In this document: positions 2,452-36,298 of the stretch, piece after piece | Numbering within the stretch: the stretch's first letter is position 1 | How the letters are laid out: each line of letters begins with the position of its first letter | The notes under the pieces: model-generated | Database searches by the model: none | The model's input: the letters and a program-made list of their open reading frames with translations, nothing else | Told to the model about the DNA's origin: nothing | IMG/VR virus record: IMGVR_UViG_3300044974_001280 | Coordinates: 166,446-230,445 of that record | Direction: 5' to 3' (one strand) | DNA: 64,000 nt | Translations under genes and position numbers: made by a program

Positions 2452-2891
2452 GGGGCTGAAAGGAATCGACTGGAGGCATAAGTTCTTTGACATGATGCAG
2501 GCGGTGCTAGCTTTGGAAGCACCTAAATATCCTAAGTACTTCTTAAATGGCGAAAATCCATTTTTTGCTTTGGCTGGACTAGGTTCAGCGGAGCCGGTTG
2601 AAGTTGCCTTGGCAGCCTAAACCTCGGGGGGTGACACCCAGGAACAGAAAGTCACGAGGGTGGGAAAAAGGGTTAACAGTACCACACAATCCGTCGATCC
2701 TCAGTAACCCTGCGGGCTCCGGTCCAATACCCTTCAGATCGCTGTAGGGATCGATGATGTGGATTATCTCCTATCACAGTCAAAAACTAGGAGGTAAAGA
2801 TTTGTCTGTTTAGAAAAATGGACTAAGCCTGTGAACGAGTTTCATGGAATTACCTAGCAGGACGGCGGTTCGAATCCGCCCAGCTCCACCA
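2452..2891 (+). ncRNA. ssrA: tmRNA
   Basis: 5' GGGGCTGAAAGGAATCGAC pairs with 3' CAGCTCC-ACCA (G3.U70); T-arm GGCGG-TTCGAAT-CCGCC; tag ORF 2549-2620 GENPFFALAGLGSAEPVEVALAA*. Confidence 0.95.
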
Positions 2892-2954: not shown

Positions 2955-3401
2955 AAGGCGTAGTTCTGCTTCAAAAAAAATTAAAAATTATGGCAATACT
3001 TTATTTTCTTTTAGGTGCGCTTACCGTGGTGGTCTTGGTCACCGTGGCGGGTGTGTTTAAGATGAATTCGGATTTAGACCGAAAAATCAGAACCAAAATC
3101 TCCGACCACATCGAATCGGTCATGAAAGAGATTGAAATTACAAGGAACAATTTACACTCCGATGATTCTTACATCCACAATCGGATCGATGAAGTTCTCG
3201 ACGAAATCAATAAACGAGAAGAAGTCGGAATCAGATCGGGAAGAGAACAATTTGAATCTCTACAAAAGCAGTTGGATTCCAGATGCGATAAGCTCTGGGC
3301 TCAGGTGAATGCAAATTACGAGTTGAGCCAAATGAGGTTCAACGATATTTCAAACAAAAAAAATTCCCAGACAGAGGGATAAAATCGCAGAACTACGCCT
3401 T
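2955..3401. repeat. Perfect 15-bp inverted repeat bracketing ORF 2990-3382
   Basis: AAGGCGTAGTTCTGC (2955-2969) and GCAGAACTACGCCTT (3387-3401). Confidence 0.9.
2990..3382 (+). CDS. Membrane-anchored coiled-coil hypothetical protein
   Basis: N-terminal hydrophobic helix followed by a charged helical region. Confidence 0.75.
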   Translation: MAILYFLLGALTVVVLVTVAGVFKMNSDLDRKIRTKISDHIESVMKEIEITRNNLHSDDSYIHNRIDEVLDEINKREEVGIRSGREQFESLQKQLDSRCDKLWAQVNANYELSQMRFNDISNKKNSQTEG

Positions 3402-3413
3402 GAATTATTTATT

Positions 3414-29935: not shown

Positions 29936-30341
29936 AAGAGCAATTAGTGATATCAAATCACATATCAAATCACTTGATAGGGATATTTTAGTTTTAGAAA
30001 CTGAAAGAAAAGCATTCAAAAAGCAGTTGGATGCTCTTGAAACAATTCAATATGATAAATCTATTCCACACGATGAAAATATTCCAAATATCCCAACTTG
30101 GGACAAAAGTCATCCCGGTGGGTTCAGTATAAGTTTAACAAGTTCAGAACCTGATGAAGTTCCTTATGCAAGTATTTGCTCTTGTAATCCAAAAAATGGT
30201 GGAAGTGGTTTATGTGGTTGTATTATGGGTAATAAGATGGTCCCTAACCCAAAAAAATATGGAACTGGAGTAATCGGTACTACTACCACTAACACCGCTG
30301 TTGGTATGACTAATGGAGATATAAACTTTACTAACAAATGA
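29922..30341 (+). CDS. Hypothetical protein with CSCNPKNGGSGLCGC motif
   Basis: Coiled-coil N-terminus plus a Cys cluster. Confidence 0.65.
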   Translation: MNKIERAISDIKSHIKSLDRDILVLETERKAFKKQLDALETIQYDKSIPHDENIPNIPTWDKSHPGGFSISLTSSEPDEVPYASICSCNPKNGGSGLCGCIMGNKMVPNPKKYGTGVIGTTTTNTAVGMTNGDINFTNK

Positions 30342-31057
30342 AAACAATATTCATTGGAGATATCCACGGCCGTCCAATTTGGAAGGACATTGTAGCAAAA
30401 GAAAACGCAGATAGAATAATCTTTGTTGGAGATTACTTTGATTCTTTTGATATACCCGGTGTTGACCAAATACATAACTTTAAGGAGATATGTGAGTTTA
30501 AACGAAACTCCGACAAGGAAGTGATTCTATTGACAGGTAATCATGACCTACACTATATGCATATCAACGAAACTTATTCAGGTTTTCAACCCGCTCTTCA
30601 GTTTGATATCAGCCATGTTTTATCAGAGAATATGGACCTGTTGCAAATGGCATACTCATTTGATGATTTTCTTTGCACTCACGCAGGAGTAAGCCATTAT
30701 TGGGTTGTAGAAACTTTTGGTCGTTGTAATGTAGATACTTTGGTTGATGAAATCAATGAGCTATTTAAACACAGGCCTCATGCTTTTGCTTTTAATGGAT
30801 TTAATGCTTATGGGGATAATGTAACTCAAACTCCTGTGTGGATAAGACCTACTTCATTGTTAATGTCTAACAAACGAAGAAATGAAAACGCAATCAAAAA
30901 ACGTTTTATTCAAATATTTGGACATACTCAAATTAAAGAAATAGATTTGAATGGTATGAATAAACACATGGGTGGTAGATATTATATGATAGATGCTTTA
31001 CCATCAAAGCAATATTTGATTTATGATGGTGAACTTAAAGTTGGTAATATGTCATAA
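30338..31057 (+). CDS. Calcineurin-like metallophosphoesterase
   Basis: IGDIHG, GDYFD, GNHD, THAG, FGHT. Confidence 0.92.
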   Translation: MKTIFIGDIHGRPIWKDIVAKENADRIIFVGDYFDSFDIPGVDQIHNFKEICEFKRNSDKEVILLTGNHDLHYMHINETYSGFQPALQFDISHVLSENMDLLQMAYSFDDFLCTHAGVSHYWVVETFGRCNVDTLVDEINELFKHRPHAFAFNGFNAYGDNVTQTPVWIRPTSLLMSNKRRNENAIKKRFIQIFGHTQIKEIDLNGMNKHMGGRYYMIDALPSKQYLIYDGELKVGNMS

Positions 31058-31145
31058 CGTTTTGCAGATAAGCGAAGGCACAAATAGCGTGGGCATTGTG
31101 CTGTTGGATTTGGGCTTTTGCTTATGTGCTGTTATAACCAGTGCT
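31053..31145 (+). repeat. attC-like imperfect palindrome
   Basis: CATAAC..GCAGATAAGCGAAGG...CTTTTGCTTATGTGC.GTTATAA; starts at the upstream stop codon. Confidence 0.6.
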
Positions 31146-31177
31146 TTTACGAATTTTTAAACTTAAATAATACAAAT

Positions 31178-31465
31178 ATGGAATTTATGTCAAACATTAC
31201 AACCGAAATAAACAAAGGAAAACTAACCAAAGCAAATGGAAAATGGTTTGTTGATTACATTACTGAACCTGCTGGAGAAAACAACTGGCATCACTGCTTA
31301 CCAATTTATGAACTTGAAAAAGAAAGCGAGCAAATTGCAGATTTACTACTTGTCCAAAAATTCAACAAGCCTGTATGTGAACTTGAACAATTCGAAGTTG
31401 ATTGGAAGTATGTCGTAACTGATGGGGCAACTAATTTTGGCTATGAATATGCAGTGCTTGTTTAG
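31178..31465 (+). CDS. Hypothetical protein in a cassette-like unit
   Basis: ATG 31178; flanked by GTTATAACCAGTGCT / AGCATTGGTTATAAC. Confidence 0.65.
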   Translation: MEFMSNITTEINKGKLTKANGKWFVDYITEPAGENNWHHCLPIYELEKESEQIADLLLVQKFNKPVCELEQFEVDWKYVVTDGATNFGYEYAVLV

Positions 31466-31540
31466 CATTGGTTATAACTCCGTCATTTGGAGACACGAAA
31501 ATTCGTTCGTATATTTATACCATAAATAAAAATAAAAAAT

Positions 31541-31978
31541 ATGACACAAACAATTGGACAGTTGCTTAAATGGAACTTTGAAATAGATGGCGACTTGGTA
31601 ATTGAAACTAAAGACGGGCAGGTTGCTTATAGCGAAGATGCCACCGGTTATTGGGAAAGTAGTGAACGAGATGATAGAGGTAACCAAATTTATTGGGAAA
31701 ATTCAAAGAACCGTTGGGAACGATATGAATATGATTCTAATGATAATCGGATTAAAGAAACTACGTCAAATGGGTTTTGGGCAAGGTATGAATACAATTC
31801 TGAACGGGATATAACTTTGTATGAAGATTCGACAGGGTATTGGAAACAAACTACATATTCAAATAATGGTTGTCGAACAGAGGATTCCAATGGGATGTGG
31901 GAAAGAATAGAGTATAACTCCAAAGGATATGAAACTTACTATGAAAACTCAAAGGGTGAAGTCATAAACAAACTTTAA
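31541..31978 (+). CDS. Short-repeat (YD-like) protein
   Basis: About 22-aa repeats of Y.E.S.G.W...EY.S.G/N. Confidence 0.75.
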   Translation: MTQTIGQLLKWNFEIDGDLVIETKDGQVAYSEDATGYWESSERDDRGNQIYWENSKNRWERYEYDSNDNRIKETTSNGFWARYEYNSERDITLYEDSTGYWKQTTYSNNGCRTEDSNGMWERIEYNSKGYETYYENSKGEVINKL

Positions 31979-31979
31979 A

Positions 31980-32429
31980 ATGAAAAAACAAATTTACTTA
32001 GATGATGTTAGAACCCCCAAAGAAGATATTTGGGTGGTTGTGAGGAATTATGACGAGTTCGTGGAAGCGGTAACAAATATAGGATTAGAAAACATAGATG
32101 TAATTTCCTTGGATCACGATTTGGGTGATACAGCGATGAATGAATATTTCAATAACGTGAGTCCAAACTACAAATTGGATTACAATAACATCCTTGAAAA
32201 GACGGGAATGGATTGTGCTAAGTGGTTGGTCAATCACTATCTTGACAATTACCTTACTCAGAAAAGTAGGTCAGAAAAAAAATCATCTGGTATCGTTTTT
32301 CCACAAGTGTATACCCATTCGGCAAATCCAATCGGATCTGCCAACATTATGGGATACATTAATAATTTTTGGATGAATGAGGGTCAACCTCAATCTTGTG
32401 TTCGTGTGAACATTCCACACTTTGTTTGA
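31980..32429 (+). CDS. Cyclic-phosphate-processing receiver-like domain protein
   Basis: IYLDDVRTP, ISLDHDLG, KTGMDCAKWL, HSANPIG. Confidence 0.8.
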   Translation: MKKQIYLDDVRTPKEDIWVVVRNYDEFVEAVTNIGLENIDVISLDHDLGDTAMNEYFNNVSPNYKLDYNNILEKTGMDCAKWLVNHYLDNYLTQKSRSEKKSSGIVFPQVYTHSANPIGSANIMGYINNFWMNEGQPQSCVRVNIPHFV

Positions 32430-32458
32430 GATTTTTCCGTATATTTGTAAAAAAAATA

Positions 32459-33157
32459 ATGATTAGAGAAAATCCAAAATATCAAACGTTCATTGAATCC
32501 TGGTGTTCTAAGGATTCATATAGAACACAAATGTTGAAACCAACTTGTTTTGACGATGGATGGGTCTGCGCTACGGACACCTACAAATTAATTTGGACGT
32601 ACGATCCTGATTATAAAAATTTTGAAAACAGATACATTTATTCGGATACAGAGGGGATCAAGGCACTTCCAGTTGTTGAGAAATTCTCCGAATTTTACGA
32701 GGGTGTGCCTCGACCTATCGGTAGAATCAAAATCAAGGATTTTGAAGAAGTTTTTGAGAAAATCAAATTAATTCCAGAATTTTCGGAAAAATACATAGAA
32801 TGCTCTGAGTGTGATGGATTTGGAACTATAGAGTGTGACTGTTGTGGTTCAGAATCTGATTGTGAAAAATGTGATGGCGAAGGTGAAATACCCTCAGGCA
32901 CGGAGGAAACTGGACATTACCACTTACCAGAAAATCATTACTTTAATGTGGATGGAGTTTACTTGTCTATGAAGACTACAAGGGAATTGATTGATAATCT
33001 TTTGTTCGTTGGAATATCTGAATTGGAAATCTTTTCCACCAACGATTATAGGTGTTTTTTTGGAATACCCGGAGAAAAAACATTTTTGCTCGTTATGGGT
33101 TGTTATGTATCGGATGCACACGAAAGTCAGATATTTGAAGTTCAAATACATTCCTAA
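32459..33157 (+). CDS. Hypothetical protein with a DnaJ-type CxxCxGxG zinc finger
   Basis: CSECDGFG..CDCC..CEKCDGEG. Confidence 0.7.
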   Translation: MIRENPKYQTFIESWCSKDSYRTQMLKPTCFDDGWVCATDTYKLIWTYDPDYKNFENRYIYSDTEGIKALPVVEKFSEFYEGVPRPIGRIKIKDFEEVFEKIKLIPEFSEKYIECSECDGFGTIECDCCGSESDCEKCDGEGEIPSGTEETGHYHLPENHYFNVDGVYLSMKTTRELIDNLLFVGISELEIFSTNDYRCFFGIPGEKTFLLVMGCYVSDAHESQIFEVQIHS

Positions 33158-34539: not shown

Positions 34540-34578
34540 GAAAATTTCTAGTATATTTACGCTATAAAAATAAAAGTT

Positions 34579-36166: not shown

Positions 36167-36298
36167 AGTCAGGTGGCGGAATGGTAGAAGCAAGTAAGCT
36201 AAAGCTGTGGGGGATGTTGCAGGAGAGACTCAAGAGACCGAAAGGTGTTATTCTCAAAGGACTCAACCCACGTACAGGTTCGAATCCTGTCCTGACTA
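36167..36298 (+). ncRNA. tRNA-like RNA with an expanded, non-canonical central region (copy 2)
   Basis: AGTCAGG-TGGCGGAATGGTAGAAGC...GTGGG..CCCAC..ACAGG-TTCGAAT-CCTGT-CCTGACT-A. Confidence 0.8.

Follow-up and report, generated by a model that had tools for sequence, protein, structure and literature searches.

Integron gene cassettes are units of one promoterless-looking ORF and one imperfect-palindrome recombination site, attC, in which the order is AAC, spacer, stem, variable loop, stem, spacer, GTT. The crossover falls in the AAC/GTT core, so that the two ends of a cassette are complementary, and one strand folds much better than the other. Recombination depends on the integrase IntI, a tyrosine recombinase with an insertion that reads extrahelical bases, but clusters of attC sites without an integrase (CALINs) have been reported in virulent phages (Qi et al., 2023, PMC9892861). 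Folded single-stranded DNA is also the substrate of Xer recombinases during CTX-phage integration at dif. A single-gene unit of comparable layout was found in the window analyzed here, a stretch of 64,000 nucleotides from the 230-kb contig of a lake-water jumbo phage (IMG/VR record IMGVR_UViG_3300044974_001280, positions 166,446 to 230,445). The unit and its flanks consist of the following features.

30338-31057, + strand: upstream calcineurin-like metallophosphoesterase gene (Pfam PF00149, E = 9e-10), whose TAA stop (31055-31057) lies inside the TAAC target.
31055-31058, + strand: left TAAC core; the crossover lies within ATAAC (31054-31058), which is repeated at 31474-31478.
31059-31478, + strand: the mobile unit of 420 bp, made up of hairpin, right-hand arm, ORF95, and left-hand arm.
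31059-31063, + strand: GTTTT, an unpaired spacer on the 5' side that faces a single T (31130) and is analogous to the unpaired central spacer of attC.
31064-31129, + strand: long stem-loop with the 16-nt arms GCAGATAAGCGAAGGC (31064-31079) and GCTTTTGCTTATGTGC (31114-31129), one G x G mismatch at the 4th pair, and conserved G.T wobbles.
31131-31145, + strand: arm A (R'-like), GTTATAACCAGTGCT, the invariant GTTA (31131-31134) followed by a cassette-specific part.
31178-31465, + strand: cargo ORF95, 95 aa, function unknown; its TAG stop (31463-31465) overlaps arm B.
31464-31478, + strand: arm B (R''-like), AGCATTGGTTATAAC, which pairs with arm A and ends in the right TAAC (31475-31478).
31501-31978, + strand: downstream flank with the promoter-like motif CGTATATTTATACC (31501-31529) and ORF145 (31541-31978), both of which directly follow the metallophosphoesterase stop in relatives that lack the cassette.

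An earlier note on the sequence had described an attC-like hairpin starting at 31053 and an ORF with complementary ends, and had inferred gene capture by an integron-like system acting in trans. The observation is confirmed, although this start is 2 nt early. Folded as the + strand, 31053-31138 reaches -31.2 kcal/mol (z = -3.98, with 0 of 200 shuffles as good), whereas the - strand reaches only -16.0 kcal/mol (z = -2.1); with DNA parameters the values are -16.6 and -8.2. This bias comes from G.T/G.U pairs. Arms A and B are complementary at 14 of 15 positions, and the one mismatch is a G.T wobble on the + strand. Taken alone, the inverted repeat is not beyond chance, because the window holds 10 such repeats (15 nt or more, at most 1 mismatch, 50-600 nt apart) against about 2.4 in shuffles. 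The motif GTTATAAC occurs only 3 times in the 230-kb genome, with 6.7 expected, and 2 of the 3 flank this ORF. The significance of the locus comes from comparison with other sequences, not from the window alone. The note was also correct that the second site lacks a full hairpin and that no integrase is in the window; the latter holds for the whole 230-kb contig, which is 85% complete and has no PF00589 match. ORF95 has no Pfam or PHROG hit, and its 26 metagenomic protein clusters are all unnamed. Its predicted fold (AlphaFold pLDDT 85) is a small beta-barrel with weak OB/S1-like matches, but the best PDB match (E = 0.07) is not enough to name a function.

Comparison with relatives revealed exact presence/absence variation. 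Three close relatives from three metagenomes, with a flanking phosphoesterase 92% identical and an ORF145 85% identical, lack exactly 31059-31478 and read TCATAAC|TCCGTC where the window has the 420 bp in between. The breakpoint lies inside the shared ATAAC, and homology breaks at 31054-31056 in contigs of other runs. One lake metagenome run contains both forms, but this evidence is weak: the empty joint (31053>31474, skipping 420 nt) is a 78-nt contig with a 25-nt side and may come from the cassette-less relative. The same cassette (91-93% amino-acid identity) also occurs in three unrelated contexts, where homology starts at TAAC|G and stops at GGTTATAAC|. In two of them the next element is another hairpin of different sequence but the same frame. 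Hence both conditions under which the note would have withdrawn its reading, no similar elements elsewhere and no presence/absence variation at the GTT/AAC cores, fail.

The hairpin belongs to a large family. Its 24-mer occurs in 57 viral stretches, 47 of them with TAAC in place, with 44 different upstream contexts and 14 different A arms, and many unrelated stem sequences share the frame TAAC|G-bulge-stem-loop-stem-T-GTTA. These sites often form arrays on one strand, for example 16 sites in 8 kb of a complete 32.5-kb phage. The hairpin finder gives noise at weak energies; only sites at -23 kcal/mol or better, or covariance-model hits, were used. Structure is conserved more than sequence: in 22 aligned sites TAAC and GTTA are invariant, 14 of the 15 inner-stem pairs show compensatory changes, and 94.9% of cells are paired against 72.7% in shuffles and 38-47% in slid controls. 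Pairing as such is partly by construction, because the sites were picked by a hairpin finder, but the register, the conserved wobbles, and the array context are not. Cassette ends pair with their own partner, with a mean duplex energy of -11.9 kcal/mol against -6.5 for non-cognate pairs, and 20 of 30 intervals of 1 kb or less reach -10 kcal/mol or better. Joining the ends of the window's cassette extends its hairpin by 15 bp, as expected for a circular intermediate with one folded site, and this junction folds at -27.0 kcal/mol on the + strand and -15.8 on the - strand with DNA parameters. BLASTN of the hairpin against 50,697 isolated phage genomes gave no match; the family is visible there only through the covariance model, in Polaribacter phage P12002L. 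A 20-mer hit in Pontibacter rugosus was a chance match with no hairpin.

Arrays in other viral contigs end in the gene of a compact tyrosine recombinase. The covariance model finds one site in the 230-kb genome itself but 232 in 58 of 80 loci fetched with this recombinase, all upstream of the gene and on its strand, and none in the downstream flanks or on the opposite strand. Downstream genes are unrelated between loci (247 families across 76 loci). One 246-kb contig has two such recombinases, each closing an array, and the window's own hairpin family occurs in two of the recombinase-linked arrays. No ORF95 homologue was found in the recombinase loci. The recombinase gene has no cognate end of its own, so it is the platform and not cargo. 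The enzyme has 267-271 aa, core-binding and catalytic domains with the R-K-H-R-H-Y catalytic residues (motifs LRVSE, KGRKDR, HxLRHS, and GHSS..TTEIYTH, read from the translations), and no arm-binding domain. Its best models are XerA, XerC, and XerD, and the closest solved structures are XerA and XerD. It matches the IntI model TIGR02249 only in two stretches, skipping the IntI-specific insertion, at 135-171 bits against a cut-off of 265. Close homologues were not found at E <= 1e-70 in 401 sampled Bacteroidota genomes, a strict threshold applied to a sample only, and no tRNA gene that might indicate a prophage att site was adjacent in 60 loci. One MAG locus has a 46%-identical recombinase convergent with a hairpin. 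Tyrosine recombinases near MAG arrays were too numerous in those genomes to interpret. A description of this recombinase link was not found in the literature searched, where nothing beyond the phage attC clusters of Qi et al. (2023) was encountered.

The explanation considered most likely, though with some reservation, is that 31059-31478 is a single ("orphan") gene cassette of an integron-like recombination system of Bacteroidota phages. In the integrated state its one structured site would be split, with the spacer, the long stem-loop, and arm A at the 5' end and arm B at the 3' end. After excision as a circle, an intermediate that is inferred, B would join the hairpin and the ORF-sense strand could fold into one hairpin of about 115 nt with a 15-bp outer stem (B/A), an asymmetric bubble, and a long inner stem. 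A tyrosine recombinase is proposed to cut this folded strand at TAA(C)|G and to exchange it with another TAAC, which can be a site in an array or, as here, a bare TCATAAC at the stop codon of a phage gene. Replication would resolve the junction, as in attC x attI or CTX-phage integration. Because no such enzyme is encoded in the phage contig, the cassette probably arrived, and could leave, only with a recombinase supplied in trans, for which the Xer-like enzyme is the best candidate. Its involvement is inferred from genetic linkage, and no experiment or read-level evidence of circles or cleavage exists. The linkage could also reflect a lambda-like gene order, with an early accessory region reading into int, and most array-bearing phages examined have no recombinase at all (among them P12002L and an array-rich complete phage, G004, in whose whole-proteome Pfam scan no recombinase of any known class was found; a further phage, G002, likewise lacks one). 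Moreover, one hairpin joined to 14 different A arms needs a second breakpoint at GTTA, which a single crossover at TAAC|G does not explain.

Other interpretations appear less likely. The hairpin might be an ordinary attC recombined by a host or plasmid IntI, with the phage merely carrying a CALIN-type fragment. The architecture matches an attC bottom strand, HattCI called a site of this family an attC in P12002L, and other phage attC sites are recombined by IntI1. However, no match above the TIGR02249 cut-off was found in 87 genomes of one candidate host order, where only Xer-like partial matches occurred, and P12002L_attC1 was the one site of six that IntI1 did not recombine. The latter speaks against IntI but is no positive evidence for any recombination. 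Together with the lack of the IntI insertion in the linked recombinase and the deviating strand and end structure of the cassettes (see below), this makes a canonical integron cassette unlikely. A non-autonomous IS200/IS605-like (or RAYT/PATE-like) element moved by a HUH Y1 transposase would account for insertion directly 3' of a fixed tetranucleotide with no target duplication beyond it, for the subterminal hairpin at the left end, and for the strand-specific fold. This possibility is still more doubtful, as no Y1_Tnp (PF01797) was found in five viral records that hold these sites or among the 53 ORFs of G004, and as the right end has no hairpin but pairs with the left, cassette by cassette.

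That the hairpin is mainly an RNA or transcription element, such as a terminator, a processing site, or a translational control element, is also improbable, although an RNA role could coexist with recombination. The hairpin does lie on the mRNA-sense strand upstream of each ORF, with conserved G.U-compatible pairs. Near-identical 80-nt hairpins would support homologous exchange, array regions sit beside phage recombination genes such as ERF, YqaJ, NinG, and Rad52, and homology breaks on both sides of the hairpin. Yet the empty site has no hairpin and shares only ATAAC with the element, so homologous exchange between stem-loops cannot have made this insertion. Unrelated stem sequences all keep TAAC/GTTA in a fixed register, and cassette-specific end pairing has no role in a terminator. 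No terminator-like site or T-run pattern was found in 30800-31700, ARAGORN and Rfam found nothing at the hairpin, and Rfam at gathering thresholds detected only a tmRNA and a tRNA in the window. A chance palindrome plus a chance inverted repeat around an ordinary phage gene is refuted by the comparative data and a covariance-model E-value of 6e-21, even though such repeats are not rare and pattern matches with up to 3 mismatches are expected about once.

A wider reading, about as likely as not, is that Bacteroidota phages carry their own analogue of the integron, in which the Xer-like platform captures and reshuffles single-gene cassettes through sense-strand hairpins and builds arrays that can fill about a quarter of a small phage genome and are rich in DNA methyltransferases and other likely counter-defence genes. 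If correct, gene capture through a folded single strand is not confined to IntI integrons, and a second, phage-borne lineage would do the same job with a simpler enzyme. This bears on how attC-type sites and integron integrases arose from Xer-like ancestors and on how lytic phages exchange small accessory genes so precisely. It would also provide a phage-side counterpart to bacterial integrons, which have been proposed to act as banks of anti-phage defence genes (bioRxiv 10.1101/2024.07.02.601686), and P12002L_attC1 may simply need its own recombinase. For the phage studied here the consequence is modest, namely one extra 95-aa gene of unknown function inserted harmlessly after a stop codon.

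Among known systems, IS200/IS605 elements share the strand-specific hairpins, the insertion 3' of a fixed tetranucleotide, and the lack of target duplication, but have separate subterminal hairpins at both ends and different left and right cleavage sites, whereas here there is one hairpin only, both ends finish in TAAC, and the elements form arrays linked to a tyrosine recombinase. With Xer systems, including archaeal XerA, the array-linked enzyme shares its closest models and structures, and the idea that two inverted arms on one strand fold into a duplex recombination site, followed by a single strand exchange, is also common to both. However, Xer enzymes resolve chromosome dimers at one dif site, while this enzyme is phage-borne and sits at the end of cassette arrays, and no dif-like 11-6-11 site is evident. 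Compared with integrons, the linked recombinase is Xer-like, the ORFs lie on the folding ("bottom"-like) strand so that the hairpin precedes its ORF in the window and in all arrays read, the paired ends are about 15 bp rather than 7 bp with a conserved T.T/G.T irregularity, and the site next to the recombinase is a full hairpin and not a simple attI. The inner stem is 15-20 bp, and the irregularities seen in it are two-sided 1x1 mismatches rather than the one-sided extrahelical bases described for attC, although bulges were not surveyed systematically. On the other hand, the unit shares with integron cassettes the frame of the site, the breakpoint in the AAC/GTT core, the complementary ends, the strand bias, and the occurrence both in arrays and as orphan cassettes at secondary GTT sites. 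Relative to site polarity, the recombinase gene sits where intI sits, next to the array and transcribed away from it when the window's minus strand is taken as the attC top strand. Finally, DNA methyltransferases are common cargo, as in the phage CALINs of Qi et al. (2023), and P12002L_attC1 of that study belongs to this family according to the covariance model.

The window forms the last 64 kb of a 230,445-bp viral contig in IMG/VR (G000:C1:166446-230445), for which CheckV estimates 85% completeness. Nearly all genes lie on the + strand, the only relatives at the DNA level among isolated phages are Flavobacterium phages, and identical sequence is held by about 20 lake-water or freshwater metagenome runs. 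The contig is therefore treated here as a jumbo phage of a freshwater Bacteroidota host, although the host assignment is an inference. A full-length tmRNA gene at 2452-2891 (+) (Rfam RF00023, 72 bits, E = 4e-26) lies inside this phage contig and was not called by ARAGORN. A 132-nt match to the tRNA model at 36167-36298 (+) covers the whole 71-position model (31.5 bits, just above the gathering score) but is likewise not called by ARAGORN, and may represent an intron-containing or otherwise interrupted tRNA. The locus of interest, read on the + strand, is organized as follows:

30338-31057 (+), gene for a calcineurin-like metallophosphoesterase, whose TAA stop is part of the following TAAC
31055-31058 (+), TAAC
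directly downstream of TAAC (+), GTTTT
31064-31079 (+), hairpin arm GCAGATAAGCGAAGGC, followed by a loop region
31114-31129 (+), hairpin arm GCTTTTGCTTATGTGC, followed by a single T
31131-31145 (+), GTTATAACCAGTGCT, the first of two complementary 15-mers
31178-31465 (+), a 95-codon ORF (ORF95)
31464-31478 (+), AGCATTGGTTATAAC, the second 15-mer

The + strand of 31053-31138 folds at -31.2 kcal/mol (z = -3.98; 0 of 200 shuffles as good), whereas the - strand folds at -16.0 kcal/mol; with DNA parameters the values are -16.6 and -8.2. The two 15-mers are complementary at 14 of 15 positions, and the odd pair is a G.T wobble on the + strand. By itself this inverted repeat is unremarkable, as the window contains 10 of that quality against about 2.4 in shuffles. 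Another of the 10 is a 15-17-nt inverted repeat (AAGGCGTAGTTCTGC; 2954-2970 and 3388-3404) that flanks the 130-aa ORF 2990-3382 just after the tmRNA and is not of the TAAC/GTTA type. The earlier note, which had described an imperfect palindrome running from TAAC to GTTA and an adjacent ORF with complementary ends, is correct apart from a 2-nt offset at the start.

Comparison with related contigs revealed that the unit is a discrete insertion. The phosphoesterase has 60 relatives in IMG/VR. Three contigs from three metagenomes (L004-L006) have a phosphoesterase 92% identical and an ORF145 85% identical, and read ...ATATGTCATAAC|TCCGTCATTTGG... where the window has the same flanks separated by 31059-31478, which is 420 bp. 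Only ATAAC is shared between the two junctions, and the breakpoint thus lies within those five bases. Two other assemblies (L003, L007) are identical to the window and a Logan contig spans the whole stretch, so that the arrangement is not an assembly artefact. In one run, a short contig joins 31053 to 31474 (skipping 420 nt, with 5 ambiguous letters) beside a contig with the filled form. However, its side is only 25 nt and it may stem from the cassette-less relative; it is counted here as population-level presence/absence and not as excision. A recurrent intergenic motif, (C)CGTATATTT(A/G)T..ATAAA.AATAAA, lies at 31501-31529, 32431-32459 and 34551-34574, just upstream of start codons. It is probably the promoter plus leader of this phage and resembles the Bacteroidota -7 box.

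The same unit is also found elsewhere. Relatives of ORF95 (91-93% identical) lie in three other contigs that share no flanking genes with the window, and in all of them homology starts at TAAC|G and ends at GGTTATAAC|. In two of them the next bases are again GTTTTG... and open a hairpin of unrelated stem sequence that closes with ..TGTTAT. One contig (L065) reads as a run of at least three hairpin-plus-ORF units, of which the second also has complementary ends (GTTATGTGCC ... GGCACATAAC) and the third carries a DNA methyltransferase. Contigs from other lakes lose homology to the window at 31054-31056, at 31134 and at 31478. The gene at 31980-32429 (+), which encodes a cREC_REC (cyclic-phosphate processing receiver) domain protein, has copies 93-95% identical in contigs whose neighbouring phosphoesterase is only 68-77% identical (L015, L020, L053). 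This suggests recent exchange of this gene as well, by unknown means.

The hairpin belongs to a large family. Its 3' 24-mer occurs in 57 viral stretches, of which 47 have TAAC in the expected place, with 44 different upstream contexts and 14 different arms after GTTA. In one lake metagenome (run X19), the summed contig depth over positions 31023-31163 rises to 60-150 at the hairpin, against about 5.5 on the flanks. The hairpin is therefore a repeat shared by many genomes in that sample, and probably a frequent cause of assembly breaks. Many contigs hold arrays of such sites on one strand. The stems are 60-130 nt long and belong to several unrelated sequence families, but the frame is always the same: ..TTG-NNNN-TAAC | G(G/T)TT(T/G) - stem - loop - stem - (T/GT) - GTTA(T/G).. 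In an alignment of 22 diverse sites, including that of the window, TAAC and GTTA are invariant, a G.T pair next to them is kept in 20 of 22 sites and another inside the stem in 21 of 22, and 14 of 15 inner-stem pairs show compensatory changes. In this alignment 94.9% of cells pair, against 72.7% in column shuffles and 38-47% when partners are slid. As these sites were picked by a hairpin finder, pairing as such is partly by construction, but the register relative to TAAC/GTTA, the fixed wobbles and the array context are not. Between consecutive sites, the 16 nt after GTTA pair with the 16 nt before the next TAAC. The mean duplex energy is -11.9 kcal/mol, against -6.5 for non-cognate combinations, and 20 of 30 intervals of 1 kb or less reach -10 kcal/mol or better. 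The variable four to five bases next to the core covary (for example GGCG/CGCC, TCGG/CCGA and TGCG/CGCA), and there is a recurrent T.T plus G.T irregularity about 10 nt out. The stop of the ORF is often the TAG at the start of the distal arm, as in the window.

ORF95 has no family and its function is unknown. It has 26 unnamed metagenomic relatives and a confidently predicted small beta-barrel fold with only weak OB/S1-like matches. Across hairpin loci the commonest neighbouring ORF family is N6/N4 DNA methyltransferase, with 27 ORFs in 20 loci, and the arrays sit in early regions with ERF, YqaJ, NinG or Rad52-type recombination genes.

The search for an enzyme that might act on these sites gave no candidate in the contig of the window, which has no tyrosine recombinase and no Y1 transposase. 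A complete 32.5-kb phage (G004) devotes about 8 kb (G004:C1:4120-12339; loci L154/L155) to 16 consecutive hairpin cassettes, all on one strand, yet none of its 53 ORFs matches any recombinase family in Pfam. No IntI above cut-off was found in 87 genomes of the order of one Flavobacteriales MAG that holds the hairpin. A covariance model of the sites (R1) gave 28 hits in a 246-kb viral contig (G001), and both tyrosine recombinase genes of this contig lie directly after an array, on the same strand. These proteins are 267-271 aa long and carry the usual catalytic motifs, as read from the translations. Their best matches are XerA, XerC and XerD models and structures, and they match the IntI model only on either side of the IntI insertion. 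IMG/VR holds 203 relatives, the best 80 of which were retrieved with flanks. R1 finds 232 sites in 58 of these loci; all lie on the strand of the recombinase and upstream of it, and none lie downstream or on the other strand. The last site typically ends 100-400 nt before the start codon. For comparison, the whole 230-kb G000 gives one hit. Genes downstream of the recombinase are unrelated from locus to locus (247 families across 76 loci), no tRNA gene adjoins the recombinase, and the recombinase gene has no cognate distal arm. The hairpin family of the window itself occurs in two of these arrays, and a small MAG contig (L130) repeats the pattern. An exception to the upstream, co-oriented rule is a Flavobacteriales MAG contig (L134), in which a more distant, 46%-identical recombinase homologue (1038-1643, +) is convergent with a hairpin of the window's family (at about 1967-2045, -).

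Clusters of attC sites without an integrase have already been reported in virulent phages (Qi et al. 2023, PMC9892861), where IntI1-mediated recombination was shown for five of six sites. The primer sequence of their P12002L_attC1 is the site at 29996-30068 (minus strand) of locus L141. R1 scores it as a short-stem member of the present family, together with three more sites in that phage, and it was the one site that did not recombine with IntI1. Literature searches for a Xer-linked hairpin-cassette platform in phages or Bacteroidota found nothing further. Smyshlyaev et al. 2021 note that the IntI insertion is not fully conserved within their integron-like recombinase subgroup.

Taken as a whole, the unit is a real mobile cassette, and the inference of the earlier note, that an integron-like system acting in trans captured this gene, is supported. 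The most likely mechanism is single-strand, hairpin-guided site-specific recombination by a Xer-like tyrosine recombinase supplied in trans, a step that is inferred from genetic linkage only. The main point left unexplained is how one hairpin becomes joined to many different proximal arms, which implies a second breakpoint at GTTA.

Joining the right end of the window's cassette to its left end gives one continuous hairpin of about 115 nt, which consists of a 15-bp outer stem, an asymmetric bubble (GTTTT facing T) and the inner stem. With DNA parameters it folds at -27.0 kcal/mol on the + strand and -15.8 on the - strand. This is the layout of a folded attC bottom strand: an R box ending in AAC, an unpaired spacer, an L box and a variable loop. 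The breakpoint, within the resolution of ATAAC, falls where IntI cuts (AA|C), and the insertion target, read on the other strand, is GTTATGA, which resembles a secondary GTT site. If the minus strand of the window is taken as the attC 'top' strand, the recombinase of the arrays sits where intI sits in an integron, beside the array and transcribed away from it. The cassette ORFs, however, are on the other strand. The cassette should not be filed as an integron, because the defining integrase was not found in the contig or, above cut-off, in the genomes searched, the polarity of the ORFs is reversed, and the site differs from attC in its arms and in the irregularities seen.
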